A stretch of DNA of 64,000 nt from Eukaryota sp. TZLM1-RC (Eukaryota; Protista; Metamonada: BaSk clade). The notes under the pieces are model-generated. The model did not search any database, had not been told where the DNA came from, and saw only the letters and a list, made by a program, of their open reading frames with translations. Below, piece after piece: positions 4,462 through 38,648 of the stretch. The number at the start of each line of letters is the position of its first letter. The stretch's first letter is position 1. Made by a program: the position numbers and the translations under genes. The stretch is taken from assembly GCA_040285825.1 (NCBI GenBank), contig JAUPSS010000006.1:1426001-1490000 (forward strand), in the 5' to 3' direction.

Positions 4462-4729
4462 TCACAGTATTTTGTGATTCAAATGCTATTATTATTTTCT
4501 CCAAAAATAAACCCTACCTTAAAATTTCACCAAAAACCCTGTGATTGTTTATTAAGGTAGATGAGTCTATTTAAAAAGCTTAGTTTTTGTTTATATTTGA
4601 AAAACCCTGCTGTTTCACAACTTCCACAATGTTTCAGAACATATGCATGAACCATTGCGAATGAGTTTTCATCGGTTACCTTATCTTATATTTGTTGTTA
4701 TATGTTATAGACTATTTTATTTTTTGCAT

Positions 4730-6025: not shown

Positions 6026-6110
6026 CGACAACTGGGAGTTGAACCCACAAACATTGGGATTTCTACTGTTAATTTGTTGGAGGTGGTGGTATTTGAACCT
6101 AGAACATGGT
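6026..6110 (-). pseudogene. Two adjacent degenerate tRNA 3'-half-like remnants (also 11558, 32748, 46770)
   Basis: Minus strand reads ...ctaGGTTCAAATaccaccacctcca, then tagaaatcc...tGGGTTCAACTCCCagttgtcg. These are T-loop/B-box motifs followed by acceptor-like 3' ends; no 5' halves are visible. Confidence 0.35.
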
Positions 6111-6998
6111 TTTGAGTGGAAATCTTTATTCTTATTTATTATTTATTTATTATTAAACTAACTAAAATTTCTCATGAAGGATGATTTTCGCTGGTTTGGG
6201 TTTTAGTTAATTATCATGTTTTTACATGTAAATGATATAATTTACCATTAACCTTAAGTTGGTTGATTGAACACAATTTAAACTTGAAATTTACCAATGC
6301 CAAAACTTAAGGTTCAGATGATCTAGATGATGAAGTTAGTGATGAAACATTAAGACCCTTGTTACAACTAATGTTGGCTTTGATGATGTAGTTGTTGTTT
6401 GTTATTCAAATGCTATTGTAGGGTTCCATTCATCATTATTATTATTTTCAATTTGAGAGTCTCCACCAAATATTGAGAGTAATTCTCTTTATTTTGAGTT
6501 TCTATTGATAAACACATAAACGACTAATTAATCATCAATCATTCTGTTTTTAACTGTTGTAAGATGATTATGGTCAAGAAAGACCTGATTACGTGTTTCT
6601 GTATAGTCTACATGTTTTTGGATTTTTGGATGTTTGTTGACAACAACCTTTTATGTGATTTAACTAGTCTTAATATAGTCTTATTAATATATTTATATAT
6701 GATTTTTTATAACTAATCATTTAAATAATTACTTTTTCGAAATGAAAAATGTGAAGCACTGTTATTATGGTGCAAGACAAGTCTGGTTTTTGTTTCCAAA
6801 CATTGTGTTAAGGACAACTACCATGTGAATACAGCAACTTCACAATTATTAGAAGATTTTTGTGAGAAAAAAAACGTCTGAGTGAATATTTGAGTTTTAT
6901 CAATTCTATGATTAGTTTTATGATTAACATACCTAATACTTCAGTACTGACAATTTGTTACAAAGGGTCAATGGACTGAGAAGAATTATTTTCCGATT

Positions 6999-9900: not shown

Positions 9901-10076
9901 GCAGGATTCTTACATGTTCATGCCAGCTGCGTTGACCAAAAGACAGTGTAGGCAGCATGAATGTGAGAACTCTATCAAATGACCAATTGCCCGTCACAGT
10001 ATTTTGTGATTCAAATGCTATTATTATTTTCTCCAAAAATAAACCCTACCTTAAAATTTCACCAAAAACCCTGTGA
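6999..10076 (+). pseudogene. Gene X copy 2 (type B) with a nonsense substitution
   Basis: CAA in other copies is TAA at 8938-8940. There is also a non-homopolymer indel at ~7379 (cagtaattg vs cagttttg). Confidence 0.85.
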
Positions 10077-10261: not shown

Positions 10262-10936
10262 AAATATGTTTGAACATTCCTATTGATCAATTATCACTAA
10301 AAAGTGTATTCAAATTCACCACAGCTCACTTTGCATCATGCTCTGAATTGTTCTAAATTGATAACTTATCGTTCTTCATTACATGATCCTGTTAGAGACA
10401 CTCTTTTCAATATAGCACAAACTGTAAGCATATCGTGTAACAAAGAGCCTCTGCTAAAGCAAACACGTTCTCAGAATTATTTTGGTTCTGGTGATAAAGT
10501 TGCTGTATACTGTGATTGGATTGATAATTCTGAAGCTACTTTTGACTTTGTCTCATGTAATGATGCAAATGATACTGTTGTTCACAGAGGAAAACTTGGT
10601 CCTGTAAGTGTTCTTGATTTTAAAGCAAAAGAAAGACATAGAAAATATGATACAGATACTGAGGAGGCTAATGTTGATAGAAATACACAGCTGGTTTTTA
10701 TTGCTTTCCCATTTTCGATTAATGGAAGATTATCAAATGAAGCAGAAACTTTTTTGAATGATTTCCAAAAAAATGTTCAAGTAAAAACAATGAAAAGTTT
10801 TGATATTGGCTTATGGCGTTCACGGATTCAATTTGCCATTATTAATAGATTACCTCGGTTTTTCAATCGAATAAGAGAAGCTTTAGCTAGACAGCAAGCA
10901 GATCAAGATTTTGTAGAGGAAATCTTGGTTCAATGA
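10262..10936 (+). mobile_element. 3' end of a CRE-clade non-LTR retrotransposon, second S spacer
   Basis: Identical 210-aa ORF to 4772..5404. Confidence 0.8.
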
Positions 10937-12530
10937 TAGTCGTCCCATTAGTTATGAGTTAATTTAATTAAGTGTGAAAATTCAATAAATATTAAATAAC
11001 AAAGAAGCAATAACTTCATATTATTTTTAGACTTACATAGTCAGCCTTGATTATTCTGTCTATAAAGTTCAAGAATCCTGTTATTGACGTAGCACAATCT
11101 AAATAACCTAGACGACCCTCGGATATTAGGTTTTGAATCTTCTGTCCAAGCCGATCGATCGGATATTTTTACACCCTTCAGAAACTGTAAACATTACAGA
11201 TATCCTTTCAAGATATTCTTTGAAACCCAACTCACTTCATTCTTGGTGTAGTTCTTTCAGTTCATTCCCTCTACTTTCGTATCATCCATATAATGTGTCT
11301 CTGGTATAATCACTCTTTTTCTTGATCATTCTCTTGATGTGCTCGTGCTTATTTCAACAAGAAAGATACTTGATATTCACCACCATCGTTCTCCACACTG
11401 TATTCTACTTTACTTCAAATTCATACCTGGGACATTCAGTTTCCATTCCACACCTGTATTGTCCAGCAAACTTCATTATACATTTCATTGACCTTAGCTT
11501 GCTGATTTTCATCACATTTGCACCCTCTATTCCCTTATGATTACCCCATATGATTTCCGACAACTGGGAGTTGAACCCACAAACATTGGGATTTCTACTG
11601 TTAATTTGTTGGAGGTGGTGGTATTTGAACCTAGAACATGGTTTTGAGTGGAAATCTTTATTCTTATTTATTATTTATTTATTATTAAACTAACTAAAAT
11701 TTCTCATGAAGGATGATTTTCGCTGGTTTGGGTTTTAGTTAATTATCATGTTTTTACATGTAAATGATATAATTTACCATTAACCTTAAGTTGGTTGATT
11801 GAACACAATTTAAACTTGAAATTTACCAATGCCAAAACTTAAGGTTCAGATGATCTAGATGATGAAGTTAGTGATGAAACATTAAGACCCTTGTTACAAC
11901 TAATGTTGGCTTTGATGATGTAGTTGTTGTTTGTTATTCAAATGCTATTGTAGGGTTCCATTCATCATTATTATTATTTTCAATTTGAGAGTCTCCACCA
12001 AATATTGAGAGTAATTCTCTTTATTTTGAGTTTCTATTGATAAACACATAAACGACTAATTAATCATCAATCATTCTGTTTTTAACTGTTGTAAGATGAT
12101 TATGGTCAAGAAAGACCTGATTACGTGTTTCTGTATAGTCTACATGTTTTTGGATTTTTGGATGTTTGTTGACAACAACCTTTTATGTGATTTAACTAGT
12201 CTTAATATAGTCTTATTAATATATTTATATATGATTTTTTATAACTAATCATTTAAATAATTACTTTTTCGAAATGAAAAATGTGAAGCACTGTTATTAT
12301 GGTGCAAGACAAGTCTGGTTTTTGTTTCCAAACATTGTGATAAGGACAACTACCATGTGAATACAGCAACTTCACAATTATTAGAAGATTTTTGTGAGAA
12401 AAAAAACGTCTGAGTGAATATTTGAGTTTTATCAATTCTATGATTAGTTTTATGATTAACATACCTAATACTTCAGTACTGACAATTTGTTACAAAGGGT
12501 CAATGGACTGAGAAGAATTATTTTCCGATT

Positions 12531-15500
12531 GTGAAGGCTGTTTACATTATCTTGCACAGTGAAGAAACTGTTGAGATAGAGCCTTTGAAAACCAAGTTAG
12601 CTGACCTCCCTAGTCTCCTTGATGTGAAGCCTTACCCTTATAAAATTAATCTCATTAGTGCCATGTCCTACTATTTAAATTTCGTACCAGATTTTCGTGT
12701 TCATTATCTCTTTGATATAGCCTCGAAAAGATCTATTTGGATGATAGAGTTCTTCGTTAGTGACAAGCGCTTAATGATCAAGAATACAATTCCTATGCTC
12801 TACAAAAACCTTATACAAACTTACTTCAGTCGCATTGAAAATAGGCCCGTTCATTTTCGAGACCTTGATAAAAGTCAAAAAGCCCATTTTCTGAAAAATT
12901 TTCCTTCAGTTTTGCCCAAATCAGTTTCGGAGACCCGTGGGTGTGCTGTTTTGTTCAATTCGGAGGAATTCACATCAATATTGCAACAGTATTCTCATTT
13001 TGTTTACAATTTGTTTGCATATCCGTTTGTAACGTATTTTGATACGGCATCTGAGTCGTTATTTAGTACTTATGAAGCACAACTTGTTCAGTTATCAAAT
13101 ATTAAAACTGCACTACATGTTTCAGCCAGGGAAGATATCAATTGTGCTCCTAGTCAAGTTTCTCCTATTAATGGTAAACCTTGTTATGTTTATAAGATGG
13201 ATGCAAACTTTAATATGCGTAATTTAATCAAAATTTCATTTTGTCAATTATCAAACCTAATTTTCAATTTGTTAAATACTTACGATCCCATTGTCGATTA
13301 CCGCTTCCCTTTTAAACATGCGGCTCTCAATGGGCCTAATCAACATCTCTCCGTCATTAATTTTCAACCTTTCGCCAGCGACGAAGATGCACTTCAAGCT
13401 CTAGAAAATTTTTTTCAAGGAGGTAGGGTACATCCAAGCCTTTTTTCTTATGAATGTGATCATTCAGTTCCAGTACATTCTGGAATGAAAGACATTTGCC
13501 AAGAATTTAGCGACTTATCACCAAAAGGAAAATATGTTACTTGCGTCCAACGGAAATCACCGTGTATTGGACTAACAACTGCTATTTATTTTGCACTATC
13601 GAAATTAAACAATGTGGTTTGTTATCAATTGGAGAAATTTGTGTCTGATACCCCGGACAAAGTATATGAAAGTCTTATCTATATTAACAGTGTAGTTTTA
13701 TTTTGTAAGGATTTGCCGTTGAACAATGTACACAAACTCATGAATACACTTAGCCAGAGACACTTTCAGTTTTTTCATTTGGTGTACATTGGAAACAAGT
13801 TACCGGCCTTGAAAGAAAGGATGTTTCGATACAAAAAATACACGTATGAAATGAATCTTTATAGAGACAATTTTATTTCTACTTTGAACAAACGTTGTGA
13901 TCAATTAAACAAAAAACTAGGACGACATGTTGAAAAAGATTTCTTATATATAGGAATTGCATTATTTAAGAAGAATTTTTCCTTAGCTGAGACTACAGTT
14001 AAGAGTTTGCTCGATTCAATGTGGAAGAAACTGAACGATCGAGATAAAGGACTATTTCTATTTTATTGTCTTGTTTCGGTGACTGGGAAATCAGAACAAT
14101 TTCCCCTTGATTTATTCACTTCTGAAAGATTTCATTCTAATTTTGAAAAGTTGCCTTGTTTTAACAGAATTATTCTCCCTGCTGTTGGAGCTGGTACAGG
14201 TCTATTTTGTATAAATAGAACTGTTGCTGAAATAATTTGTTCTTCTTCAACCAACTCTGGCGAATCAACTATTATGAATGCTTTTCGTCTTCTTTGGGAT
14301 TCTGGAAGCGAAGCATGGTTTCATTCTGTTTTTATAAAGGTTATTCGAAAGTTATTTCTTAATCGAAGAGGTAAAATTAAAATTCAACCAAAAGATGCTT
14401 TTGATCTCTATTTTTAATCCGATGTACTAGCGAAAATCTTCCTTCAGAATTATTATATAGTCAGCTTCAATGTTCGTTTTTGAAAATTTGTGCAAAAGAG
14501 GGATTCGAAGTTGAAAAACTTATAGATGAAGCCATTTGTATTTTTAACAACAGTGGCAAAATTGTTGAAAAATTTGGAGATTACGATGTGCCTGAAGGTT
14601 TTGTTAAAGAACGTCAAATTTCTCAGTTCTTCACTATTCTAGGGGATACATTCCGTTATTTTGCTCAAAATTTGCATTCCAGGAGAGCACACTGTTTGGA
14701 TCTCTCGTTGATTTCCTATCAACAGGCATTGGCTGAGGATTCCGGGTCTACTTTTGCAGCGCATGGATTTTTATTGACATATTGTTGTTGTTATTTTTCG
14801 GGTAGAAATGATTTGGCTAACCGTTTTTCCACCAGCGAGTATCTCACACATGAGTTATTTATTTCTTTAGTTGAAAAATCCCCAGATTCCGTCCTTCAAT
14901 TTGATTCATGGTTTACGAGTATGGGAGAATTTTTGCTGTCTCACAGTTTTGAAGCATTGTCTGATGATGAGCAACTAGCAGTTGGTAGAATATGGTCTTT
15001 TTTCTTCATAAGTAAGATGTTATCTTTTGACGATCGAAATTTGGTTTGGGATAATGATACTGTTGCTGAGTATATCAAAATTCCTCAATCGCGACTATTG
15101 TTGCAACATGATGAAGATGATGATAATTCAGATTGTTTTACATTGGCAACTGTTGTGGAGAAAGACCACCGAAATCTATCTTTAGAGGCAGCTACTCTGT
15201 TTCTTTACGGTGAAACTGATTGTGAATCTGTATTTAATAATTTGGAAGATGTTTTCACTAGTAGTAGTAGTAAAAACTGTACACTAACTACAATGCTCCA
15301 ATTATATTTTAAGCCTGAGTTATTCCGATCCAAGAATTTCAACATTGTTCTTATTGATGACCAATTTATAAATCAACAATCCTGTTATCTTGAACTAAGA
15401 GATTCCAAATATAGGCTGTGTAAGGCACAGCAGGATTCTTACATGTTCATGCCAGCTGCGTTGACCAAAGACAGTGTAGGCAGCATGAATGTGAGAACTC

Positions 15501-15604
15501 TATCAAATGACCAATTGCCCGTCACAGTATTTTGTGATTCAAATGCTATTATTATTTTCTCCAAAAATAAACCCTACCTTAAAATTTCACCAAAAACCCT
15601 GTGA
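12531..15604 (+). CDS. Gene X copy 3 (type B), full length; single 1-bp shift in a T-run at ~14416
   Basis: ORFs 12531..14417 and 14480..15604 join if the T-run has one more T, as in copy 4. Confidence 0.75.
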
Positions 15605-15789
15605 TTGTTTATTAAGGTAGATGAGTCTATTTAAAAAGCTTAGTTTTTGTTTATATTTGAAAAACCCTGCTCTTTCACAACTTCCACAATGTTTCAGAAC
15701 ATATGCATGAACCATTGCGAATGAGTTTTCATCGGTTACCTTATCTTATATTTGTTGTTATATGTTATAGACTATTTTATTTTTTGCAT

Positions 15790-16098
15790 AAATATGTTTG
15801 AACATTCCTATTGATCAATTATCACTAAAAAGTGTATTCAAATTCACCACAGCTCACTTTGCATCATGCTCTGAATTGTTCTAAATTGATAACTTATCGT
15901 TCTTCATAACATGATGCTGTTAGAGGCACTGTGTTCAATATGGCATGAACTGCCTGAATCTGGTGTATTAAAGAGCCTCTGGTGAAAGATGAACTGTCAT
16001 TGAATATTTTTAGTTGATGACAGGGGTGATATATAATGCGATAGGGTTGCGGACTCTAAAGCTGCTGTTGACGTTGTCTTCTGTAATGTGCCAAATGA
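15790..16098 (+). mobile_element. Degraded CRE zinc-knuckle/RLE fragment at the start of the L spacer (also ~24145, ~38838, ~52958, ~63348)
   Basis: Translates HALNC..RSS*HDAVRGTVFNMA*TA*IWCIKEPL...DRGDI...VDVVFCNV, homologous to the S-spacer ORF. Confidence 0.7.
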
Positions 16099-16710
16099 GA
16101 ATTAGTTTTTTGTCAATTTGAATTTTATTAAGTGTTGTAGTTCAATAAAACAATTCAATTATGTAAGGAGGTTGAAACAATTTTTTTTCTTATTGTTACA
16201 AATATTTGTTGCGAAACTCTTTTGAGGAAATTCAGCAATTGACACATGGTTATAAAACACGAGATCACAATCCAAGGAATAAATTGGATTTGTTGAGTTG
16301 GCATTCATCTTAATGAATGTTTAGTGGAATTACTTCTTATTAATTAATACTAAGTAATATTTTTTGTAGTTTCCATTTTACAGGATTATAAAGATTGACT
16401 GGAGTTTGCTCAGTTGGGTTTTTTTCTGTAGTTATAAAAACATAATTCATTTTTGAGTCAAAATCAAAAATAATTCTTGTATTTCAGTACCCAGACTTAA
16501 TAGCACTCAATTTATTGAACCAACATTCCCTGTGTTTTTGAAATGAACTGAGGAGAGAATGAAACACAAATTTCAAATTATGAGCCATTTTGATAGAGCA
16601 TCAGCACTTGAATGAGTAAATCGTATATGTGTAATTACGGGTAATGTTGCTTTCTAAATAATTATTTTAAATGAATTAACGTTTAAAGATTACGGTTAAC
16701 TTTATAGAAC

Positions 16711-17343: not shown

Positions 17344-18149
17344 ATGGTTTTTTTATCTCAATAATTATTCCAGTTTTAAAAATAAATTAAAGTATTATAA
17401 AATTTTTTTTATAGAACTATTTACAATAATTAATCACAAATTGATATCAATACATTCCCTCTACCACGATACTGAAAGTTTTGTTTTTTGAACTGGGTCC
17501 ATCCAAACAGTGATCAGTTGGTGATACAATTTTGTTATGGTTTTTTGTGCTGTTGCCAGCATAAATTTTGCTTATTAAAAAGACGGCTTAACCTCAAGGA
17601 AATTGTGTAAATTTTTTTATTAATTGAGAAACAGAATTATGTATATGGGTTGATGAAAAATTCTTCCAGTATTTCCTCAAATGAGATATTTTGTTCAATA
17701 AGTACTGTGCAAATACTGTAATAAATATGAATATAATATACTATATATAATAATTATATTGTGCAACCTTGCCAATCCAAATGTCTTTAATATAAAGTCT
17801 TGGATCATTTGTTTTAAGGTTATTTATTGAACTCAATCAATCAACCTGTGTCGTCTAGTATGGGAAATATATGGTTTTGAATGCTCAATACAAAACGACT
17901 GATCAGAAAATCGAATGTACGACCACTTTCTTTGAGAAGATTTCCTAAATCATTTGAAAAATTGAGATCTAAAAAAATGGCCGTGTTCTTCCTGATGCCC
18001 AAGAAGCAAAAATCTTGTTCAGTTCTTCAACTGCTTATTCTTCCTCCTGTAAGGTTTTAACTGCACTATTTTCGGTCTTTCGTTTCCTTTTTCAATGGTC
18101 ACATCATTCTGAAGCAGATGAATCGAATTTCATTGAGTACTGTTATCTC

Positions 18150-19445
18150 TTTGACCATTTTTTGGAAATCATTCAAAAAAGTTTCTGCTTCATCTGATAA
18201 TCTTCCATTTATCGAAAATAGGAAAGCAATAAAAACCAGCTGTGTATTTCTATCAACATTAGCCTCCTCAGTATCTGTATCATATTTTCTATGTCTTTCT
18301 TTTGCTTTAAAATCAAGAACACTTACAGGACCAAGTTTTCCTCTGTGAACAACAGTATCATTTGCATCATTACATGAGACAAAGTCAAAAGTAGCTTCAG
18401 AATTATCAATCCAATCACAGTATACAGCAACTTTATCACCACAACCAAAATAATTCTGAGAACGTGTTTGCTTTAGCAGAGGCTCTTTGTTACACGATAT
18501 GCTTACAGTTTGTGCTATATTGAAAAGAGTGTCTCTAGCAGGATCATGTAATGAAGAACGATAAGTTATCAATTTAGAACAATTCAGAGCATGGCGCAAA
18601 GTGAGTTGAGGTGAATTCGAACAAATACATTTTTCTTTTGATAATAGTTGATTAATGGGGATATTCAAATATAATCTCATTTTTATTACAAATGCATCAT
18701 TAGTAACACACAGTCCAAATCTTCGTGGTACAATTTTTACAAAAAGTGAAGAATCTGATGACTGGCATTCACAAACACCCTTTTCCAATAACAATGAGTG
18801 AAGATTTTGATTTAAAACAGCCGAGCTGCATATATATATTATAAAGATCAGTTTCATACATTCCAGTCAATCGTTTCTAAAATGTTCGAAGAGTGTATTT
18901 TAAATTTAATAGATTCTTTTCTGGAATATTGCAATACAATGATGGAAAGCATCGACTCCATTTTTCTACATCAATTTTTGAAATTTCTTTATTTAATACG
19001 AAAACAGTAGAACTTTGCGTTATAAAAAATTTTCCCGATCTGCAAATATTTCGGAAAACTCAAAGATTGCGTTTTTGCATCCCCCAATAAAAACACACGA
19101 AGTCAGAATAGAAGCCCTCATCCAACTTAAACCGCCATAATGTGGACTAAGGTAAGCATGGTCTGGAATTTAGAACATTTTACATCCCAGAAATTGTGAC
19201 AAAACATTTGCACCTAACTCATCAAACTTCTGAGCCAAAGGCCTAGTGGAAAGAGGATTTTTAGATCGAAATATATGATTGAAGTTGGAATTAAAACACA
19301 GTCTTCTAATGGTAAATTTGATATGTCTCTGTACATCTATGGTCATCATTCGGTCAATTGTATCGGAAATTGAGTTCAACTTTTTAAACATTTTTTTGGT
19401 AATGTCATCATTATTTCCTAAAAACGAACCCAAATGACGAATAGC
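18150..19445 (-). mobile_element. Inverted CRE-clade fragment (RT thumb/linker, CxC...HxxxC knuckle, RLE), L spacer 1
   Basis: RHLGSFLG...NHIFRS, then MRLYLNIP...CICSNSPQLTLRHALNC...HDPARD. Confidence 0.85.
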
Positions 19446-19842
19446 ATCAATTGAATATAATTCGGCTTGAGGTATAATTATAATACAGTTTGAACAACAT
19501 CATGATTTTGAAGCAAATTTGTAGTCCAAATGTTGATATTCCTTTGTGCTATTTTACAAAAATCATAAGGTATTTCAATCTGTTCATGTTACTGCAGTGT
19601 TTTCAAAATTGTTTTTGCAAATGGTTAATTTATCAACTTCCATTCAGGTATTAAATAGAATTAGTTTTTTGTCAATTTAAACTTAATTTTAAATTTAAGT
19701 GTTGTAGTTTAATAATGTAATTCAATTATGTCTGGAGGTTGAAACAATTTTTTTCTTATTGCTACATATAATTGTTGGGAAACTCTTTTGCGGAAATAAT
19801 AAGCTGAGATGAGATGATGATGCAAGGGATTTGTATTTGATG

Positions 19843-19924
19843 TAGGGTTGGACGATGCGTATCCGTAACTGTTACGTTACGTTAAATAACAGTAACTGGT
19901 ACGTATTCTGAGCTCCAACCGCAA
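19843..19924. repeat. ~80 bp imperfect palindrome (MITE-like/hairpin), also ~29033, 42981, 57111
   Basis: Nested inverted pairs ggttgga/tccaacc, atgcgta/tacgtat and actgtta/taacagt. Confidence 0.6.
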
Positions 19925-20365: not shown

Positions 20366-20653
20366 CTAAGAATTATTCACAGTTTGGGTTTGTACATTAA
20401 GAGTAGAACCTTTGCAGCCACCAAGTAAAATAAGCTTCGGATGAATTAACTTCTCAACTGTTGAGAAACTTTTGTGTGGAATTCACCAAGGTAAAAGACT
20501 CTAGAAAGTGCAATGATTTCAGAATTGTTGCTCGTATGATATCAAAAAGGAGCTCATGTTTGAGACTTTTCCGGAATTCAGTGTCTAACGTAAAGAAAGA
20601 AGAATGAATACGTATAACAAAGGATATGGAGTTGTGTGATGAGATGATGATGC

Positions 20654-23600
20654 TTGGAAATGCAGCTTTTTGTACTTACTTCTGAGATGCATCGATCAAA
20701 TATACTTCACACCCTGCGCTCGTGGTTTTCTTCAGTACCTGTGGAGCAAGACCACCTAGATCTCAAAAGATCCAACCCCTTTCAATCGTATCCAAGCACT
20801 ACATTTGAATCTACCCACAAGTCTTTCCTTCACACAATCTGTGGTCTTCATAATACTTTGAATCCTTTTGTCACAGAGAACAACATGAAAGCTGTTTACA
20901 TTATCTTGCTCAGTGAAGAATCTGTTGAGATAGAGCCTTTCAAAACCAAGTTAGCTGACCTCCCTAGTCTCCCTGATATGAAGCCTTACCCTTATAAAAT
21001 TAATCTCATTAGTGCCATGTCCTACTATTTGAATTTCGTACCAGATTTTCGTGTTCATTATCTCTTTGATATAGCCTCGAAAAGATCTATTTGGATGATA
21101 GAGTTCTTCGTTAGTGACAAGTGCTTAATGATCAAGAATACAATTCCTATGCTCTACAAAAACCTTATACAAACTTACTTCAGTCGCATTGAAAATAGGT
21201 CTGTTCTTTTTCGAGACCTTGATGAAAGTCAAAAAGCCCAGTTTCTGACAAATTTTCCTTCAGTTTTGCCCAAATCAGTTTCGGAGACCCGTGGGTGTGC
21301 TGTTTTGTTCAATTCGGAGGAATTCACATCAATATTGCAACAATATTCTCATTTTGTTTACAATTTGTTTGCATATCCATTTGTAACGTATTTTGATACG
21401 GCATCTGAGTCGTTATTTAGTACTTATGAAGCACAACTTGTTGAGTTATCAAATATTAAAGCTGCACTACATGTTTCAGCCAGGGAAGATATCAATTGTG
21501 CTCCTAGTCAAGTTTCTCCTATTAATGGTAAACCTTGTTATGTTTATAAGATGGATCCAAACTTTAATATGCGTAATTTAATCAAAATTTCATTTTGTCA
21601 ATTATCAAACCTAATTTTCAATTTGTTAAATACTTACGATCCCATTGTCGATTACCGCTTCCCTTTTAAACATGCGGCTCTCAATGGGCCTAATCAACAT
21701 CTCTCCGTCATTAATTTTCAACCTTTCGCCAGCGACGAAGATGCACTTCAAGCTCTAGAAAATTTTTTTCAAGGAGGTAGGGTACATCCAAGCCTTTTTT
21801 CTTATGAATGTGATCATTCAGTTCCAGTACATTCTGGAATGAAAGACATTTGCCAAGAATTTAGCGACTTATCACCAAAAGGAAAATATGTTACTTGCGT
21901 CCAACGGAAATCACCGTGTATTGGACTAACAACTGCTATTTATTTTGCATTATCGAAATTAAACAATGTGGTTTGTTATCAATTGGAGAAATTTGTGTCT
22001 GATACCCCGGACAAAGTATATGAAAGTCTTATCTATATTAACAGTGTAGTTTTATTTTGTAAGGATTTGCCGTTGAACAATGTACACAAACTCATGAATA
22101 CACTTAGCCAGAGACACTTTCAGTTTTTTCATTTGGTGTACATTGGAAACAAGTTACCGGCCTTGAAAGAAAGGATGTTTCGATACAAAAAATACACGTA
22201 TGAAATGAATCTTTATAGAGACAATTTTATTTCTACTTTGAACAAACGTTGTGATCAATTAAACAAAAAACTAGGACGACATGTTGAAAAAGATTTCTTA
22301 TATATAGGAATTGCATTATTTAAGAAGAGTTTTTCCTTAGCTGAGACTACAGTTAAGAGTTTGCTCGATTCAATGTGGAAGAAACTGAACGATCGAGATA
22401 AAGGACTATTTCTATTTTATTGTCTTGTTTCGGTGACTGGGAAATCAGAACAATTTCCCCTTGATTTATTCACTTCTGAAAGATTTCATTCTAATTTTGA
22501 AAAGTTGCCTTGTTTTAACAGAATTATTCTCCCTGCTGTTGGAGCTGGTACAGGTCTATTTTGTATAAATAGAACTGTTGCTGAAATAATTTGTTCTTCT
22601 TCAACCAACTCTGGCGAATCAACTATTATGAATGCTTTTCGTCTTCTTTGGGATTCTGGAAGCGAAGCATGGTTTCATTCTGTTTTTATAAAGGTTATTC
22701 GAAAGTTATTTCTTAATCGAAGAGGTAAAATTAAAATTCAACCAAAAGATGCTTTTGATCTCTATTTTTTAATCCGATGTACTAGCGAAAATCTTCCTTC
22801 AGAATTATTATATAGTCAGCTTCAATGTTCGTTTTTGAAAATTTGTGCAAAAGAGGGATTCGAAGTTGAAAAACTTATAGATGAAGCCATTTGTATTTTT
22901 AACAACAGTGGCAAAATTGTTGAAAAATTTGGAGATTACGATGTGCCTGAAGGTTTTGTTAAAGAACGTCAAATTTCTCAGTTCTTCACTATTCTAGGGG
23001 ATACATTCCGTTATTTTGCTCAAAATTTGCATTCCAGGAGAGCACACTGTTTGGATCTCTCGTTGATTTCCTATCAACAGGCATTGGCTGAGGATTCCGG
23101 GTCTACTTTTGCAGCGCATGGATTTTTATTGACATATTGTTGTTGTTATTTTTCGGGTAGAAATGATTTGGCTAACCGTTTTTCCACCAGCGAGTATCTC
23201 ACACATGAGTTATTTATTTCTTTAGTTGAAAAATCCCCAGATTCCGTCCTTCAATTTGATTCATGGTTTACGAGTATGGGAGAATTTTTGCTGTCTCACA
23301 GTTTTGAAGCATTGTCTGATGATGAGCAACTAGCAGTTGGTAGAATATGGTCTTTTTTCTTCATAAGTAAGATGTTATCTTTTGACGATCGAAATTTGGT
23401 TTGGGATAATGATACTGTTGCTGAGTATATCAAAATTCCTCAATCGCGACTATTGTTGCAACATGATGAAGATGATGATAATTCAGATTGTTTTACATTG
23501 GCAACTGTTGTGGAGAAAGACCACCGAAATCTATCTTTAGAGGCAGCTACTCTGTTTCTTTACGGTGAAACTGATTGTGAATCTGTATTTAATAATTTGG

Positions 23601-23959
23601 AAGATGTTTTCACTAGTAGTAGTAGTAAAAACTGTACACTAACTACAATGCTCCAATTATATTTTAAGCCTGATTTATTCCGATCCAAGAATTTCAACAT
23701 TGTTCTTATTGATGACCAATTTATAAATCAACAATCCTGTTATCTTGAACTAAGAGATTCCAAATATAGGCTGTGTAAGGCACAGCAGGATTCTTACATG
23801 TTCATGCCAGCTGCGTTGACCAAAGACAGTGTAGGCAGCATGAATGTGAGAACTCTATCAAATGACCAATTGCCCGTCACAGTATTTTGTGATTCAAATG
23901 CTATTATTATTTTCTCCAAAAATAAACCCTACCTTAAAATTTCACCAAAAACCCTGTGA
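20654..23959 (+). CDS. Gene X copy 4 (type A head), intact; putative divergent SAMD9-like protein (SIR2-like + degenerate STAND NTPase + TPR-like)
   Basis: 1101-codon ORF with no stops in very AT-rich DNA. Homology between all copies starts at ATG 20885. Motifs ENFFQGGRV (21758), RKSPCIGLTT (21905), SVVLFCKDL (22043), FLYIGIALFKKSF, IRKLFLNRR and SQFFTILGDTFRY. CDS confidence is high; the family call is about 0.6. Confidence 0.85.
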   Translation: MEMQLFVLTSEMHRSNILHTLRSWFSSVPVEQDHLDLKRSNPFQSYPSTTFESTHKSFLHTICGLHNTLNPFVTENNMKAVYIILLSEESVEIEPFKTKLADLPSLPDMKPYPYKINLISAMSYYLNFVPDFRVHYLFDIASKRSIWMIEFFVSDKCLMIKNTIPMLYKNLIQTYFSRIENRSVLFRDLDESQKAQFLTNFPSVLPKSVSETRGCAVLFNSEEFTSILQQYSHFVYNLFAYPFVTYFDTASESLFSTYEAQLVELSNIKAALHVSAREDINCAPSQVSPINGKPCYVYKMDPNFNMRNLIKISFCQLSNLIFNLLNTYDPIVDYRFPFKHAALNGPNQHLSVINFQPFASDEDALQALENFFQGGRVHPSLFSYECDHSVPVHSGMKDICQEFSDLSPKGKYVTCVQRKSPCIGLTTAIYFALSKLNNVVCYQLEKFVSDTPDKVYESLIYINSVVLFCKDLPLNNVHKLMNTLSQRHFQFFHLVYIGNKLPALKERMFRYKKYTYEMNLYRDNFISTLNKRCDQLNKKLGRHVEKDFLYIGIALFKKSFSLAETTVKSLLDSMWKKLNDRDKGLFLFYCLVSVTGKSEQFPLDLFTSERFHSNFEKLPCFNRIILPAVGAGTGLFCINRTVAEIICSSSTNSGESTIMNAFRLLWDSGSEAWFHSVFIKVIRKLFLNRRGKIKIQPKDAFDLYFLIRCTSENLPSELLYSQLQCSFLKICAKEGFEVEKLIDEAICIFNNSGKIVEKFGDYDVPEGFVKERQISQFFTILGDTFRYFAQNLHSRRAHCLDLSLISYQQALAEDSGSTFAAHGFLLTYCCCYFSGRNDLANRFSTSEYLTHELFISLVEKSPDSVLQFDSWFTSMGEFLLSHSFEALSDDEQLAVGRIWSFFFISKMLSFDDRNLVWDNDTVAEYIKIPQSRLLLQHDEDDDNSDCFTLATVVEKDHRNLSLEAATLFLYGETDCESVFNNLEDVFTSSSSKNCTLTTMLQLYFKPDLFRSKNFNIVLIDDQFINQQSCYLELRDSKYRLCKAQQDSYMFMPAALTKDSVGSMNVRTLSNDQLPVTVFCDSNAIIIFSKNKPYLKISPKTL

Positions 23960-25698: not shown

Positions 25699-26556
25699 AT
25701 GGTTTTTTTTATCTCAATAATTATTCCAGTTTTAAAAATAAATTAAAGTATTATAAAATTTTTTTTATAGAACTATTTACAATAATTAATCACAAATTGA
25801 TATCAATACATTCCCTCTACCACGATACTGAAAGTTTTGTTTTTTGAACTGGGTCCATCCAAACAGTGATCAGTTGGTGATACAATTTTGTTATGGTTTT
25901 TTGTGCTGTTGCCAGCATAAATTTTGCTTATTAAAAAGACGGCTTAACCTCAAGGAAATTGTGTAAATTTTTTTATTAATTGAGAAACAGAATTATGTAT
26001 ATGGGTTGATGAAAAATTCTTCCAGTATTTCCTCAAATGAGATATTTTGTTCAATAAGTACTGTGCAAATACTGTAATAAATATGAATATAATATACTAT
26101 ATATAATAATTATATTGTGCAACCTTGCCAATCCAAATGTGTTTAATATAAAGTCTTGGATCATTTGTTTTAAGCTTATTTATTGAACTCAATCAATCAA
26201 CCTGTGTCGTCTAGTATGGGAAATATATGGTTTTGAATGCTCAATACAAAACGACTGATCAGAAAATCGAATGTACGACCACTTTCTTTGAGAAGATTTC
26301 CTAAATCATTTGAAAAATTGAGATCTAAAAAAATGGCCGTGTTCTTCCTGATGCCCAAGAAGCAAAAATCTTGTTCAGTTCTTCAACTGCTTATTCTTCC
26401 TCCTGTAAGGTTTTAACTGCACTATTTTCGGTCTTTCGTTTCCTTTTTCAATGGTCACATCATTCTGAAGCAGATGAATCGAATTTCATTGAGTACTGTT
26501 ATCTCTTTGACCATTTTTTGGAAATCATTCAAAAAAGTTTCTGCTTCATCTGATAA

Positions 26557-27386
26557 TGTTGTTGTTGAACTCAAATTGAATTAGTAGGTTTCTTTGTATT
26601 TCGACTGATGACGTGATACTCATTTATGAATCAGTTTTATTAATAAACAACAGATTTCTCTCTCTCCTTCGTGTGTTCATCTGCCTAACGGCATCAATAA
26701 TTATTGGCCCTTCTTATTTCAGATGACTGTTCCCTCTGTTAACCTGACGTCTCTTTCTTCCATGAAAGTTGAAAGTGTTCTTCTGTTCCTATAGGAGTGA
26801 AAGATTTATTCTTCGGTGACTCCTAAGAAAGAGCTTGTTCCAGCAAGACTCTTGGTCGATTCTTTTCTGTTAGAGTCCCTATCTCTCCAGAAATCCGACT
26901 GCTGATCCAGTGACGATGTTCTTCTCAGACATCTACAATCTGTCGTATCGTTCGCCATGTACGAAGATTTTAGTCTGGCTATGTCAGAACTGATGCTTTA
27001 TGTCCGTATTGGTGACGTCCGAGAACGTATGTCCTGTTACCTGCGACGTTTTTTCCAGGTAAAGAGTAGGGCTTCCGGACTGAAGTTGCCAGACATAGCT
27101 TTTCTGAACCGATTTGCCAGAGGACTTCTTTTCGTAGGTATCCAACGTTCTCATACCATCGATGCACCGGAGAATTTAACAAACCCCATATCTCCCCTCT
27201 ATTGAGCCAGTACTGTATTTGTCCTCAGAAAAATGGGAAAAAGTAGTGTTGTTGTTGAACTCAAATTGAATTAGTAGGTTTCTTTGTATTTCGACTGATG
27301 ACGTGATACTCATTTATGAATCAGTTTTATTAATAAACAACAGATTTCTCTCTCTCCTTCGTGTGTTCATCTGCCTAACGGCATCA
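26557..27386 (+). mobile_element. Non-autonomous LTR retrotransposon (TRIM-like), copy 2, 830 bp
   Basis: Identical 140 bp LTRs at 26557..26696 and 27247..27386. TSD ataa (26553-26556 / 27387-27390). Empty site catctgataatcttcc at 18191. PPT agaaaaatgggaaaaagtag ends at 27246. Confidence 0.95.
26723..27205 (+). pseudogene. gag-like remnant inside TRIM copy 2
   Basis: ATG 26723 is in frame with the 82-aa ORF; in-frame stops at 26792, 26798 and 26903. It lies just after the 5' LTR, where gag is expected. The gag identity is inferred. Confidence 0.5.
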
Positions 27387-29842
27387 ATAATCTTCCATTT
27401 ATCGAAAATAGGAAAGCAATAAAAACCAGCTGTGTATTTCTATCAACATTAGCCTCCTCAGTATCTGTATCATATTTTCTATGTCTTTCTTTTGCTTTAA
27501 AATCAAGAACACTTACAGGACCAAGTTTTCCTCTGTGAACAACAGTATCATTTGCATCATTACATGAGACAAAGTCAAAAGTAGCTTCAGAATTATCAAT
27601 CCAATCACAGTATACAGCAACTTTATCACCACAACCAAAATAATTCTGAGAACGTGTTTGCTTTAGCAGAGGCTCTTTGTTACACGATATGCTTACAGTT
27701 TGTGCTATATTGAAAAGAGTGTCTCTAGCAGGATCATGTAATGAAGAACGATAAGTTATCAATTTAGAACAATTCAGAGCATGGCGCAAAGTGAGTTGAG
27801 GTGAATTCGAACAAATACATTTTTCTTTTGATAATAGTTGATTAATGGGGATATTCAAATATAATCTCATTTTTATTACAAATGCATCATTAGTAACACA
27901 CAGTCCAAATCTTCGTGGTACAATTTTTACAAAAAGTGAAGAATCTGATGACTGGCATTCACAAACACCCTTTTCCAATAACAATGAGTGAAGATTGTGA
28001 TTTAAAACAGCCGAGCTGCATATATATATTATAAAGATCAGTTTCATACATTCCAGTCAATCGTTTCTAAAATGTTCGAAGAGTGTATTTTAAATTTAAT
28101 AGATTCTTTTCTGGAATATTGCAATACAATGATGGAAAGCATCGACTCCATTTTTCTACATCAATTTTTGAAATTTCTTTATTTAATACGAAAACAGTAG
28201 AACTTTGCGTTATAAAAAATTTTCCCGATCTGCAAATATTTCGGAAAACTCAAAGATTGCGTTTTTGCATCCCCCAATAAAAACACACGAAGTCAGAATA
28301 GAAGCCCTCATCCAACTTAAACCGCCATAATGTGGACTAAGGTAAGCATGGTCTGGAATTTAGAACATTTTACATCCCAAAAATTGTGACAAAACATTTG
28401 CACCTAACTCATCAAACTTCTGAGCCAAAGGAATAGTGGAAAGAGGATTTTTAGATCGAAATATATGATTGAAGTTGGAATTAAAACACAGTCTTATAAT
28501 GGTAAATTTGATATGTCTCTGTACATCTATAGTCATCATTCGGTCAATTGTATCGGAAATTGAGTTCAACTTTTTAAACATTTTTTTGGTAATGTCATCA
28601 TTATTTCCTAAAAACGAACCCAAATGACGAATAGCATCAATTGAATATAATTCGGCTTGAGGTATAATTATAATACAGTTTGAACAACATCATGATTTTG
28701 AAGCAAATTTGTAGTCCAAATGTTGATATTCCTTTGTGCTATTTTACAAAAATCATAAGGTATTTCAATCTGTTCATGTTACTGCAGTGTTTTCAAAATT
28801 GTTTTTGCAAATGGTTAATTTATCAACTTCCATTCAGGTATTAAATAGAATTAGTTTTTTGTCAATTTAAACTTAAGTTTAAATTTAAGTGTTGTAGTTT
28901 AATAATGTAATTCAATTATGTCTGGAGGTTGAAACAATTTTTTTCTTATTGCTACATATAATTGTTGGGAAACTCTTTTGCGGAAATAATAAGCTGAGAT
29001 GAGATGTTGATGCAAGGGATTTGTATTTGATGTAGGGTTGGACGATGCGTATCCGTAACTGTTACGTTACGTTAAATAACAGTAACTGGAACGTATTCTG
29101 AGCTCCAACCGCAACAACCACATTGCTACAATTCTGGGCACAGAATCTAACCTCGAAAACAGTATAAAACTGAATGTACGACCACTTTCTGTGAGAAGAT
29201 TTCCTAAATCATCTAATCAATTGAGATCTTCAGTTCCAAGGGTACCAAAAATTGAAAATGCAATTGGAACAAATTTTATGTTTCTGTCCCTTTTTTCCTT
29301 TTTTTGTCGCTTTTTTGAAAGTCATTCAAAATTGCACTGGTTTAATTTCTCAGCAACCAAGGCTATTCGGTCTTCACCTAACAAATGAATCTTGAAAACA
29401 AAACATGCGTTTGAGATTAGGGCTGTATCCAAGTGAACTTTTGAATAATTTGCTTGTATTTGTAACAAAAAACCGTCTGTCAATTTCCGTCGTATTGTGA
29501 GTTGTAAGAAATTTCTTCAATATCGGCCAGTTCTTCATAATGCTGTTCGTGATCCTAAGAATTATTCACAGTTTGGGTTTGTACATTAAGAGTAGAACCT
29601 TTGCAGCCACCAAGTAAAATAAGCTTCGGATGAATTAACTTCTCAACTGTTGAGAAACTTTTGTGTGGAATTCACCAAGGTAAAAGACTCTAGAAAGTGC
29701 AATGATTTCAGAATTGTTGCTCGTATGATATCAAAAAGGAGCTCATGTTTGAGACTTTTCCGGAATTCAGTGTCTAACGTAAAGAAAGAAGAATGAATAC
29801 GTATAACAAAGGATATGGAGTTGTGTGATGAGATGATGATGC

Positions 29843-32688
29843 TTGGAAATGCAGCTTTTTGTACTTACTTCTGAGATGCATCGATCAAATATACTTCACA
29901 CCCTGCGCTCGTGGTTTTCTTCAGTACCTGTGGAGCAAGACCACCTAGATCTCAAAAGATCCAACCCCTTTCAATCGTATCCAAGCACTACATTTGAATC
30001 TACCCACAAGTCTTTCCTTCACACAATCTGTGGTCTTCATAATACTTTGAATCCTTTTGTCACAGAGAACAACATGAAAGCTGTTTACATTATCTTGCTC
30101 AGTGAAGAATCTGTTGAGATAGAGCCTTTCAAAACCAAATTAGCTGACCTCCCTAGTCTCCCTGATATGAAGCCTTACCCTTATAAAATTAATCTCATTA
30201 GTGCCATGTCCTACTATTTGAATTTCGTACCAGATTTTCGTGTTCATTATCTCTTTGATATAGCCTCGAAAAGATCTATTTGGATGATAGAGTTCTTCGT
30301 TAGTGACAAGTGCTTAATGATCAAGAATACAATTCCTATGCTCTACAAAAACCTTATACAAACTTACTTCAGTCGCATTGAAAATAGGCCCGTTCATTTT
30401 CGAGACCTTGATAAAAGTCAAAAAGCCCATTTTCTGAAAAATTTTCCTTCAGTTTTGCCCAAATCAGTTTCGGAGACCCGTGGGTGTGCTGTTTTGTTCA
30501 ATTCGGAGGAATTCACATCAATATTGCAACAATATTCTCATTTTGTTTACAATTTGTTTGCATATCCATTTGTAACGTATTTTGATACGGCATCTGAGTC
30601 GTTATTTAGTACTTATGAAGCACAACTTGTTGAGTTATCAAATATTAAAGCTGCACTACATGTTTCAGCCAGGGAAGATATCAATTGTGCTCCTAGTCAA
30701 GTTTCTCCTATTAATGGTAAACCTTGTTATGTTTATAAGATGGATCCAAACTTTAATATGCGTAATTTAATCAAAATTTCATTTTGTCAATTATCAAACC
30801 TAATTTTCAATTTGTTAAATACTTACGATCCCATTGTCGATTACCGCTTCCCTTTTAAACATGCGGCTCTCAATGGGCCTAATCAACATCTCTCCGTCAT
30901 TAATTTTCAACCTTTCGTCAGCGACGAAGATGCACTTCAAGCTCTAGAAAATTTTTTTCAAGGAGGTAGGGTACATCCAAGCCTTTTTTCTTATGAATGT
31001 GATCATTCAGTTCCAGTACATTCTGGAATGAAAGACATTTGCCAAGAATTTAGCGACTTATCACCAAAAGGAAAATATGTTACTTGCGTCCAACGGAAAT
31101 CACCGTGTATTGGACTAACAACTGCTATTTATTTTGCATTATCGAAATTAAACAATGTGGTTTGTTATCAATTGGAGAAATTTGTGTCTGATACCCCGGA
31201 CAAAGTATATGAAAGTCTTATCTATATTAACAGTGTAGTTTTATTTTGTAAGGATTTGCCGTTGAACAATGTACACAAACTCATGAATACACTTAGCCAG
31301 AGACACTTTGAGTTTTTTCATTTGGTGTACATTGGAAACAAGTTACCGGCCTTGAAAGAAAGGATGTTTCGATACAAAAAATACACGTATGAAATGAATC
31401 TTTATAGAGACAATTTTATTTCTACTTTGAACAAACGTTGTGATCAATTAAACAAAAAACTAGGACGACATGTTGAAAAGATTTCTTATATATAGGAATT
31501 GCATTATTTAAGAAGAATTTTTCCTTAGCTGAGACTACAGTTAAGAGTTTGCTCGATTCAATGTGGAAGAAACTGAACGATCGAGATAAAGGACTATTTC
31601 TATTTTATTGTCTTGTTTCGGTGACTGGGAAATCAGAACAATTTCCCCTTGATTTATTCACTTCTGAAAGATTTCATTCTAATTTTGAAAAGTTGCCTTG
31701 TTTTAACAGAATTATTCTCCCTGCTGTTGGAGCTGGTACAGGTCTATTTTGTATAAATAGAACTGTTGCTGAAATAATTTGTTCTTCTTCAACCAACTCT
31801 GGCGAATCAACTATTATGAATGCTTTTCGTCTTCTTTGGGATTCTGGAAGCGAAGCATGGTTTCATTCTGTTTTTATAAAGGTTATTCGAAAGTTATTTC
31901 TTAATCGAAGAGGTAAAATTAAAATTCAACCAAAAGATGCTTTTGATCTCTATTTTTAATCCGATGTACTAGCGAAAATCTTCCTTCAGAATTATTATAT
32001 AGTCAGCTTCAATGTTCGTTTTTGAAAATTTGTGCAAAAGAGGGATTCGAAGTTGAAAAACTTATAGATGAAGCCATTTGTATTTTTAACAACAGTGGCA
32101 AAATTGTTGAAAAATTTGGAGATTACGATGTGCCTGAAGGTTTTGTTAAAGAACGTCAAATTTCTCAGTTCTTCACTATTCTAGGGGATACATTCCGTTA
32201 TTTTGCTCAAAATTTGCATTCCAGGAGAGCACACTGTTTGGATCTCTCGTTGATTTCCTATCAACAGGCATTGGCTGAGGATTCCGGGTCTACTTTTTGC
32301 AGCGCATGGATTTTTATTGACATATTGTTGTTGTTATTTTTCGGGTAGAAATGATTTGGCTAACCGTTTTTCCACCAGCGAGTATCTCACACATGAGTTA
32401 TTTATTTCTTTAGTTGAAAAATCCCCAGATTCCGTCCTTCAATTTGATTCATGGTTTACGAGTATGGGAGAATTTTTGCTGTCTCACAGTTTTGAAGCAT
32501 TGTCTGATGATGAGCAACTAGCAGTTGGTAGAATATGGTCTTTTTTCTTCATAAGTAAGATGTTATCTTTTGACGATCGAAATTTGGTTTGGGATAATGA
32601 TACTGTTGCTGAGTATATCAAAATTCCTCAATCGCGACTATTGTTGCAACATGATGAAGATGATGATAATTCAGATTGTTTTACATTG
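29843..32688 (+). pseudogene. Gene X copy 5 (type A head, mosaic), 3'-truncated by a deletion into the S spacer
   Basis: Gene sequence ends ttacattg at 32688 and continues as ttgctgattttc, which matches the S spacer at 11499. Confidence 0.9.
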
Positions 32689-33719: not shown

Positions 33720-35413
33720 GTGAAGGCTGTTTACATTATCTTGCACAGTGAAGAAACTGTTGAGATAGAGCCTTTGAAAACCAAGTTAGCTGACCTCCCT
33801 AGTCTCCTTGATGTGAAGCCTTACCCTTATAAAATTAATCTCATTAGTGCCATGTCCTACTATTTGAATTTCGTACCAGATTTTCGTGTTCATTATCTCT
33901 TTGATATAGCCTCGAAAAGATCTATTTGGATGATAGAGTTCTTCGTTAGTGACAAGCGCTTAATGATCAAGAATACAATTCCTATGCTCTACAAAAACCT
34001 TATACAAACTTACTTCAGTCGCATTGAAAATAGGCCCGTTCATTTTCGAGACCTTGATAAAAGTCAAAAAGCCCATTTTCTGAAAAATTTTCCTTCAGTT
34101 TTGCCCAAATCAGTTTCGGAGACCCGTGGGTGTGCTGTTTTGTTCAATTCGGAGGAATTCACATCAATATTGCAACAGTATTCTCATTTTGTTTACAATT
34201 TGTTTGCATATCCGTTTGTAACGTATTTTGATACGGCATCTGAGTCGTTATTTAGTACTTATGAAGCACAACTTGTTCAGTTATCAAATATTAAAGCTGC
34301 ACTACATGTTTCAGCCAGGGAAGATATCAATTGTGCTCCTAGTCAAGTTTCTCCTATTAATGGTAAACCTTGTTATGTTTATAAGATGGATGCAAACTTT
34401 AATATGCGCAATTTAATCAAAATTTCATTTTGTCAATTATCAAACCTAATTTTCAATTTGTTAAATACTTACGATCCCATTGTCGATTACCGCTTCCCTT
34501 TTAAACATGCGGCTCTCAATGGGCCTAATCAACATCTCTCCGTCATTAATTTTCAACCTTTCGCCAGCGACGAAGATGCACTTCAAGCTCTAGAAAATTT
34601 TTTTCAAGGAGGTAGGGTACATCCAAGCCGTTTTTCTTATGAATGTGATCATTCAGTTCCAGTACATTCTGGAATGAAAAACATTTGCCAAGAATTTAGC
34701 GACTTATCACCAAAAGGAAAATATGTTACTTGCGTCCAACGGAAATCACCGTGTATTGGACTAACAACTGCTATTTATTTTGCATTATCGAAATTAAACA
34801 ATGTGGTTTGTTATCAATTGGAGAAATTTGTGTCTGATACCCCGGACAAAGTATATGAAAGTCTTATCTATATTAACAGTGTAGTTTTTATTTTTGTAAG
34901 GATTTGCCGTTGAACAATGTACACAAACTCATGAATACACTTAGCCAGAGACACTTTCAGTTTTTTCATTTGGTGTACATTGGAAACAAGTTACCGGCCT
35001 TGAAAGAAAGGATGTTTCGATACAAAAAAATACACGTATGAAATGAATCTTTATAGAGACAATTTTATTTCTACTTTGAACAAACGTTGTGATCAATTAA
35101 ACAAAAAACTAGGACGACATGTTGAAAAGATTTCTTATATATAGGAATTGCATTATTTAAGAAGAATTTTTCCTTAGCTGAGACTACAGTTAAGAGTTTG
35201 CTCGATTCAATGTGGAAGAAACTGAACGATCGAGATAAAGGACTATTTCTATTTTATTGTCTTGTTTTCGGTGACTGGGAAATCAGAACAATTTCCCCTT
35301 GATTTATTCACTTCTGAAAGATTTCATTCTAATTTTGAAAAGTTGCCTTGTTTTAACAGAATTATTCTCCCTGCTGTTGGAGCTGGTACAGGTCTATTTT
35401 GTTAAATAGAACT
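33720..35413 (+). pseudogene. Gene X copy 6 (type B), 5' half only
   Basis: Ends tagaact at 35413 and joins directly to the B head (aaaaaaacgtctgagtg). Confidence 0.9.
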
Positions 35414-38500: not shown

Positions 38501-38648
38501 CGTTGACCAAAGACAGTGTAGGCAGCATGAATGTGAGAACTCTATCAAATGACCAATTGCCCGTCACAGTATTTTGTGATTCAAATGCTATTATTATTTT
38601 CTCCAAAATAAACCCTACCTTAAAAATTTCACCAAAAAAACCCTGTGA
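35545..38648 (+). CDS. Gene X copy 7 (type B), full length; many homopolymer frameshifts
   Basis: Colinear with copy 4 through to the stop. The disruptions I could trace are mostly extra bases in A/T runs. Confidence 0.6.

Follow-up and report, generated by a model that had tools for sequence, protein, structure and literature searches.

A divergent SAMD9/Avs9-type gene with a putative Schlafen/AlbA_2 nuclease domain, recently amplified in a metamonad genome

What does a gene encode that recurs twelve times, head to tail, in one stretch of a protist genome, and does its repetition serve a function? The gene in question, gene X, lies in a 64,000-nucleotide window (the whole stretch of DNA analysed) at positions 1,426,001-1,490,000 of contig JAUPSS010000006.1 (contig 6), assembly GCA_040285825.1, of Eukaryota sp. 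TZLM1-RC. We take this organism to be an isolate described under the name Skoliomonas litria, a metamonad that is free-living and anaerobic. Its assembly combines early MinION reads with Illumina polishing (10.1101/2023.05.03.539051). We found that gene X is very probably of SAMD9/Avs9 ancestry. We propose that copies with a full 5' head (type A, as opposed to the headless type B) encode a SAMD9/Avs9-type sensor-effector with a tRNA nuclease and that the array is a recent, unstable amplification; the probability of this reading is, in our estimate, roughly 0.6.

Read from its first ATG, gene X encodes 1,090 amino acids (20687-23959, + strand), identical to the single-exon gene call at NCBI, and a database look-up found this protein on record solely in GCA_040285825.1. 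This copy, copy 4, shows zero indels in short-read contigs. An initial annotation, made from the letters alone, had described gene X as a SAMD9-family NTPase, and the motifs that it listed are all in the open reading frame where it had placed them (FFQGG at 371, RKSPCIGLTT at 418 and VVLFCKD at 465 in 1101-residue numbering). Bacterial contamination was ruled out by the eukaryotic-type retroelements found throughout and by the 1.5-Mb contig of a protist assembly.

The N-terminal region of gene X aligns with the Schlafen/AlbA_2 nuclease domain, which overturns the earlier claim that the gene lacks one. By hhalign, residues 18-144 matched the AlbA_2 domains of 27 Avs9-like bacterial proteins with P=1.7e-4 and then 1.7e-5 (probability 78%); the alignment covers 113 columns, and its score of 39.5 exceeds every block-shuffled control (22.2+-2.2). 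The AlbA_2 part played no role in choosing the bacterial reference set, which was based on Walker A. In the alignment, E20-x4-D25-L-K27 falls on the bacterial E-x4-D-F-K, ICGLHNT on ISMANT and YIILLSE on YIVLGV, while SYYLNFV and WMIEF, formerly assigned to a SIR2-like domain, fall on the final strands of AlbA_2. Schlafens have Ex4(E/D)xK as their catalytic motif, and mutating it abolishes defence against phages (PMC13056530). Gene X shares E-x4-D-x-K with three paralogs, two of which have an identity to it of only about 23%. Among type A heads it was intact in 11 of the 12 read and carried K27R in the other (L006:10046-10096); it is missing from type B copies. The motif begins at residue 20, leaving no room for a SAM domain, whose absence had been correctly predicted and for which there is no Pfam match. 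Full-length gene X is predicted to carry a complete Avs9-like effector. SAMD9 requires E218 (PMC10246899). By alignment, the E218 site is Thr50 in gene X, and the other three acidic residues of SAMD9 (E184, E196 and D241) have candidates in E20, D25 and E77/78. Because the position required in SAMD9 is a threonine here, nuclease activity of type A is plausible but uncertain, and we judge an active enzyme somewhat more probable than an inactive one. Pfam on the N-terminal domain alone was blank, and ESM features on residues 1-190 alone were uninformative.

Three partly independent lines, namely ESM features, profile-profile alignment and a fold search, support the SAMD9-family STAND-like core that had been proposed. 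The ESM neighbours of the whole protein were nSTAND5/nSTAND7, iSirtuin and SAMD9-like clusters (0.94, 223/256 features). For the profiles, bacterial genomes were scanned with a DNA pattern for the SAMD9-type lysine-less Walker A. This gave 112 SAMD9-family genes in 120 hits (L008-L127), with AlbA_2 or kinase-like (TCAD9) heads; one member matches human SAMD9 (E 2.5e-6) and another has AlbA_2 and nSTAND5. When the NTPase profile was compared with the profile of this set, 240 collinear columns were in register (P=0.0013; score 37.3, shuffles 18.6+-3.4, maximum 32.8), and FFQGG, Walker A, the Walker B strand and the helix with FLYIG (537-541, in the helical part of the module) each landed on their bacterial counterparts. 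A hidden Markov model (HMM) of 77 bacterial cores did not match single Skoliomonas proteins significantly (P=0.08). The AlphaFold model was built from Skoliomonas sequences alone, since including bacterial homologs in its alignment would be circular. It shows an alternating beta-alpha core in the NTPase, with a predicted local distance difference test (pLDDT) score of 50-63, and residues ~335-500 model as a P-loop alpha/beta fold, on the presence of which at ~360-520 the earlier proposal had depended. In a search of 48,161 chains, human SAMD9 ranked first (Z 8.6, root mean square deviation 4.6, 147 residues aligned) and Avs5 ranked 3 and 7. The SAMD9 match spans chain residues 625-849 and starts upstream of the SAMD9 P-loop domain. 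Foldseek against the PDB placed SAMD9 at rank 3, with no E below 0.001, and an Atlas shape search placed nSTAND5 clusters first, at low template modelling (TM) scores. A single-sequence AlphaFold model (pLDDT 33) was uninformative.

As had been anticipated, the P-loop is even more degenerate than that of SAMD9. The Walker A signature H-x-P-G-x-G-G-[TS] is not matched by the aligned stretch K-S-P-C-I-G-L-T-T, which is lysine-less like the family and retains the P, one G and TT, with the H and two G altered. K408 replaces SAMD9 His737, Thr415 stands at the place of Thr744, and Walker B has a single Asp instead of two. Because the P-loop and Walker B are degenerate and the paralogs diverge further in the P-loop residues, ATP hydrolysis is unlikely and ATP binding uncertain.

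Of the SIR2-like, STAND, TPR and possibly OB core first envisaged, the STAND part held up, the TPR part did so weakly, only the first motif of the SIR2-like part was recovered, and the OB fold profile gave no match. In the SIR2-like region, the alignment is limited to the first 21 columns (P=0.013), with a score not above the highest shuffle, and the ESM neighbours carry iSirtuin. The TPR family profile, with one repeat at residues ~785-825, draws only TPR proteins from the PDB (best E 0.002 summed over repeats, single repeats weak); the TPR/C-terminal part did not match the bacterial C-terminal profile. The C-terminal end is beta-rich in an unusable model (pLDDT ~30). We therefore describe the protein as AlbA_2, a spacer, a SAMD9-type NTPase and a helical/TPR end, an order that the alignments establish for AlbA_2 and the NTPase, indicate weakly for TPR and leave presumptive for the rest.

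Gene X is a new, very divergent SAMD9/Avs9-type variant in a new lineage. Bacterial Avs9 consists of AlbA_2, SIR2-like, STAND, TPR and OB parts (Legrand et al., PMC12680541). Gene X shares with it an N-terminal AlbA_2 with E-x4-D-[FL]-K, the lack of a SAM domain, the order and similar spacing of AlbA_2, the F.GG motif and the lysine-less Walker A, and a similar size class (1,090 versus ~1,230 amino acids in the bacterial set). Unlike Avs9, it has a far more degenerate Walker A (KSPCIGLTT for HxPGxGGTT), one acidic residue in Walker B, a shorter SIR2-like part, an unalignable C-terminus and about 15% identity, and it resides in a eukaryotic host in a tandem array. Animal SAMD9/SAMD9L is a tRNA-Phe anticodon nuclease (PMC10246899; structure in PMC13600222). 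It is the top structural match of the NTPase and shares the effector-sensor layout; three of its four acidic nuclease residues have candidate counterparts in gene X. In contrast to SAMD9/SAMD9L, gene X has no SAM domain, is ~500 amino acids shorter, has a nuclease motif with prokaryotic spacing, lacks an E218 equivalent, has Lys at the His737 position and gives no OB profile match. Bacterial Avs5 (SIR2-STAND-TPR; PDB 9nc9, 9jap), of the same STAND clade, ranks high by fold, but its effector is an active SIR2 NADase and it has no AlbA_2, which is the effector of gene X. Prokaryotic Schlafen tRNases such as RorSlfn5 (PMC13056530) share the N-terminal Ex4DxK catalytic motif, whereas their sensor modules are different and they have no STAND core.

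Pfam was blank on whole proteins and domains, and so was the PDB when searched by phmmer or with family profiles of the N-terminal and NTPase parts. Searches of 5.8 billion proteins (limited to similar lengths) and 1.84 billion proteins returned only pieces from this assembly; plasmid tblastn and viral and metagenome locus scans were uninformative or blank. Older paralogs with ~23% identity to gene X lie in nearby DNA, comprising an intact 1,135-residue gene (P0005), a 1,135-codon gene with one stop and fragments. Those in L001 are an older layer of the same gene cluster, and the one-stop paralog in L128 retains the nuclease motif and the clearest SIR2-like motif. Two broken paralogs entered the comparisons with X at their stops.

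How is the array built? An at least 12-fold amplification had been claimed; the window does hold 12 copies, head to tail and all on the + strand, but only copy 4 is complete and has an open frame, the rest being truncated, headless or interrupted. No other complete member of the amplified subfamily was seen. Copies 1, 4, 5, 8 and 11 are type A, and copies 2, 3, 6, 7, 9, 10 and 12 are type B. Truncation at the 3' end affects five copies and loss of the 5' head seven; a retroelement is inserted in one copy, and a stop interrupts another. The truncation junctions are sharp and shared, at codon 630 (copies 6, 9 and 11) and codon 938 (copies 5 and 8). In type B, both nearby ATGs are changed to GTG and the first in-frame ATG is Met111; the type-B 5' module is also the joining point of the codon-630 truncations. 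More copies lie on contig 6 at 1,308-1,321, 1,365-1,371 and 1,497-1,511 kb and on contig 12 at 606-637 kb. The DNA examined, which leaves out about 50 kb before the window, has 28 NTPase-core positions, at least 26 of them distinct in the assembly when the overlap between contigs 6 and 12 is counted once. This overlap consists of 18 kb at the right end of contig 6 that recur, reversed, at the right end of contig 12 (L005:3021-20783, L002:1-17916); a deletion and the diagnostic substitutions are common to both. It is therefore probable that contigs 6 and 12 join within a single array, at which one chromosome arm was broken. A 10-kb block with the insertion-bearing copy 1 (window 1-9996) recurs on contig 12 (L007:1499-11508) at 99.4%, which is either a higher-order duplication or a misassembly. 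Elsewhere (L129:9738-15079), three head-to-tail 1.82-kb units each hold a headless, sensor-less NTPase core (codons 67-630).

The frameshifts in the array are mostly nanopore read errors, because ~95% of indels alter the length of an existing single-base run (insertions being in the majority), copies that were assembled twice have their substitutions in common, whereas of their indels only 7 of 20-35 and 9 of 19-65 coincide, and short-read contigs from three runs have no indel in the coding region. On the same grounds, we rejected the idea that the frameshifts reflect real pseudogenisation. Closer to the contig end indels become denser, increasing from 0-1 to 17-21 per kb. The truncation junctions, the retroelement insertion and the one stop look real; the array junctions 22576 and 23500 are points at which short-read contigs break off, and two runs (X2 and X3) carry the type B junction. 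Depth in the short-read runs is a relative measure and sets no absolute copy number. Run X3, a second sample with another organism label, contains the gene at about 99% identity (window 20600-23800), and the gene is therefore not confined to one library.

By substitution the copies are 98-99.9% identical; thus, the array is a recent, recombining amplification instead of a set of diversified receptors. About 20 sites distinguish type A from type B, almost all of them in codons 68-291 (13 replacement, 7 silent; ratio of replacement to silent polymorphism, pN/pS, 0.48, P=0.10), and the remaining sequence has been homogenised (12 replacement, 2 silent, 1 stop; P=0.42). Neither pN/pS value among copies (0.48 and 1.57) differs from 1, and we rejected positive selection among copies. 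The suggestion that the cluster evolves like an immune-receptor family is not supported, as full-length copies show no more than four substitutions in the sensor half, across the 3' 1,294 bp, and no replacement excess. In copy 5 (window 30312-30531), six type-B changes at codons 172-188 form a short conversion tract in a type A copy. Position 22329 is three-allelic across copies.

How might the protein work? SAMD9 has a closed state, opens upon dimerization and clusters its tRNase domains (PMC13600222). By analogy with SAMD9 and bacterial Schlafens, we propose that gene X may serve in defence and that the helical/TPR end is its sensor, keeping the protein closed until it binds a viral or mobile-element product. 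The STAND-like NTPase, probably without hydrolysing ATP, would act as a conformational switch, and the reduced SIR2-like region as a spacer between it and the AlbA_2 ribonuclease. The ligand-bound protein would self-associate and bring the nuclease domains together, and the clustered nucleases would cut tRNA, stopping translation in the infected cell. The array may have grown by unequal recombination in a retroelement-rich region, so that most copies would be truncated or headless by-products and the working dose would come from a few complete type A copies. Type B copies are more likely decayed duplicates, and a regulatory role for them is improbable. We give equally little weight to a working metamonad tRNase immunity of the SAMD9/Avs9 type in which the array is a two-component device. 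There, type B, translated from Met111 with sensor and switch but no nuclease motif, would co-assemble with type A as a decoy or damper, and the A:B copy ratio, rapidly shifted by unequal recombination, would tune the threshold of cell shutdown.

Several observations weigh against the sensor-effector reading. Neither Pfam, PADLOC, phmmer nor a single-sequence HMM gave a significant match. The SIR2-like and OB parts, both needed for SAMD9 activation (PMC13600222), have no significant match, and besides the threonine at the E218 position, GVxD is turned into LSEE. Adding a third paralog lowers the NTPase profile to P=0.031, yet the score stays above 25 shuffles. The structural model is poor (mean pLDDT 40.6), and the top Z of SAMD9 is tied, within one Z unit, with AAA+ ATPases. 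There is no selection signal among copies. A search for RNA runs, which could have shown expression, found none.

Could the ancestry be right and the subfamily nevertheless be dead or dispensable, a decaying gene expanded neutrally by recombination among retroelement debris? Eleven of the 12 copies have a structural lesion or no head, neither pN/pS value differs from 1, the adjacent paralogs are broken, and the P-loop and one nuclease residue are degenerate. We consider this unlikely, because the E/D/K motif and the 3.3-kb open frame of copy 4 are kept at 23% paralog identity, which calls for long purifying selection in the lineage, and because the type A heads, apart from the single K27R, keep the motif. 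The target might instead be endogenous retroelements or small-RNA processing, not a virus, with the nuclease limiting the expression of the abundant CRE and long terminal repeat (LTR) elements. The array does sit among retroelement fragments, whose read depth greatly exceeds that of the gene, and animal Schlafen domains are linked to transposable-element suppression (PMC13056530). However, element debris is expected near any unstable region and every tested SAMD9/Avs5 protein acts against viruses, and we regard such a target as improbable.

It is very improbable that gene X lies outside the SAMD9 lineage, as an independent fusion of AlbA_2 with a generic inactive AAA+/STAND module and TPRs. 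The Z-scores of SAMD9 and PCH-2/TRIP13 are tied, the SIR2-like and C-terminal parts are unmatched to bacterial profiles, and convergence has been proposed even for SAMD9 and Avs9 (PMC12680541). Against such a fusion stand family-specific features that align in order, namely an F.GG motif lying ~45 residues ahead of the lysine-less Walker A, a helix equivalent to PFffGL, a pW..ViD motif and an Avs9-type E-x4-D-[FL]-K nuclease, and the SAMD9 match, which begins upstream of the SAMD9 P-loop domain. We attach the lowest probability to the idea that the assembly of noisy nanopore reads inflated a two-copy (A+B) locus into an apparently large number of copies. The duplicated 18 kb at the ends of contigs 6 and 12, the indels that are read errors, and the X1 depth of about 2:1 between gene body and flanks would fit it, but some ten versions are distinct in structure (by junctions, deletion, duplication, insertion or stop), the short-read contigs show the breaks and the type B junction, and the depth ratios also fit the A:B make-up of the array.

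The sensor-effector reading matters for the origin of this family, which Mekhedov et al. found in animals and bacteria (PMC5445408). Dedicated searches reported plants, fungi, algae and protozoa to be without a SAMD9/Avs9-like protein, a gap that supports the proposed convergence of animal SAMD9 and bacterial Avs9 (Legrand et al., PMC12680541). Our literature search found no report of a protist SAMD9/Avs9-like protein. An AlbA_2-STAND-TPR family in a deep-branching, bacteria-eating metamonad would be a third lineage beside animals and prokaryotes, and it would allow a test of whether the family was inherited anciently within eukaryotes, acquired from bacteria or reached by a further convergence. 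Few cell-autonomous antiviral systems are known in protists, and gene X is a candidate for one. Such genes may escape notice because they give no Pfam or phmmer signal and their annotation is fragmented by nanopore errors.

Table 1. Coordinates of the gene X copies, their domains, associated elements and paralogs (window positions unless a locus is named)
Feature	Position	Strand	Details
Copy 1, type A	425-4544	+	broken at codon ~1065 by 827-bp LTR-bounded element
Copy 2, type B (no head)	7000-10076	+	nonsense at codon 713, common to copies in L002 and L005
Copy 3, type B	12532-15604	+	full 3' part; single homopolymer deletion
Copy 4, type A	20687-23959	+	sole complete, uninterrupted gene; 1,090 residues; TTG-extended open reading frame from 20654
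Copy 5, type A with type-B tract at codons 172-188	29876-32688	+	truncated at codon 938
Copy 6, type B	33721-35413	+	truncated at codon 630
Copy 7, type B	35546-38646	+	full 3' part
Copy 8, type A	43834-46708	+	truncated at codon 938
Copy 9, type B	47767-49490	+	truncated at codon 630
Copy 10, type B	49625-52766	+	full 3' part
Copy 11, type A	57967-59886	+	truncated at codon 630
Copy 12, type B	60023-63155	+	full 3' part
Schlafen/AlbA_2 domain, residues 18-144	20738-21118	+	hhalign against Avs9 AlbA_2
E20-x4-D25-L-K27 motif	20744-20767	+	third acidic candidate E77/E78 near 20915-20920
Shortened SIR2-like region, residues ~205-325	21299-21660	+	only first motif in register, not significant
SAMD9-type NTPase module	21661-22576	+	FFQGG (360-364), degenerate Walker A (407-416), Walker B with one Asp (D460)
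TPR-like repeat(s), residues ~762-820, within long helical region	22970-23150	+	family profile, weak
Type-B 5' module	12400-12531	+	unrelated sequence replacing first 66 codons (join at codon 67); no in-frame ATG
CRE-like reverse transcriptase/endonuclease retroelement fragment, long spacer	18138-19469	-	tblastn with RVT_1 element pieces from L129
CRE-like fragment repeats	27388-28659; shorter pieces 4772-5401 and 10304-10933	+ (shorter pieces)	tblastn
827-bp LTR-bounded mini-element in copy 1	3635-4461		TG...CA ends, TCAC (4-bp) target duplication
Second 827-bp LTR-bounded element	26556-27386	-	long spacer
Intact 1,135-residue paralog	L001:2560-5967		about 125-145 kb before window
Three broken members of another subfamily	L001:9678-11086, 15642-16269, 19313-19873		about 125-145 kb before window
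Divergent paralog, 23% identity	L128:12471-15878		1,135 codons, single stop at codon 66

The spacers between the copies are retroelement debris, and the 827-bp LTR-bounded element is recently active. The cluster contains a second duplicated gene, which encodes a P-loop AAA_14-type ATPase with an intact Walker A (L128:18703-20601, L129:1-672). Its C-terminal part looks, by eye, like a restriction-type nuclease, and it could be another defence gene.

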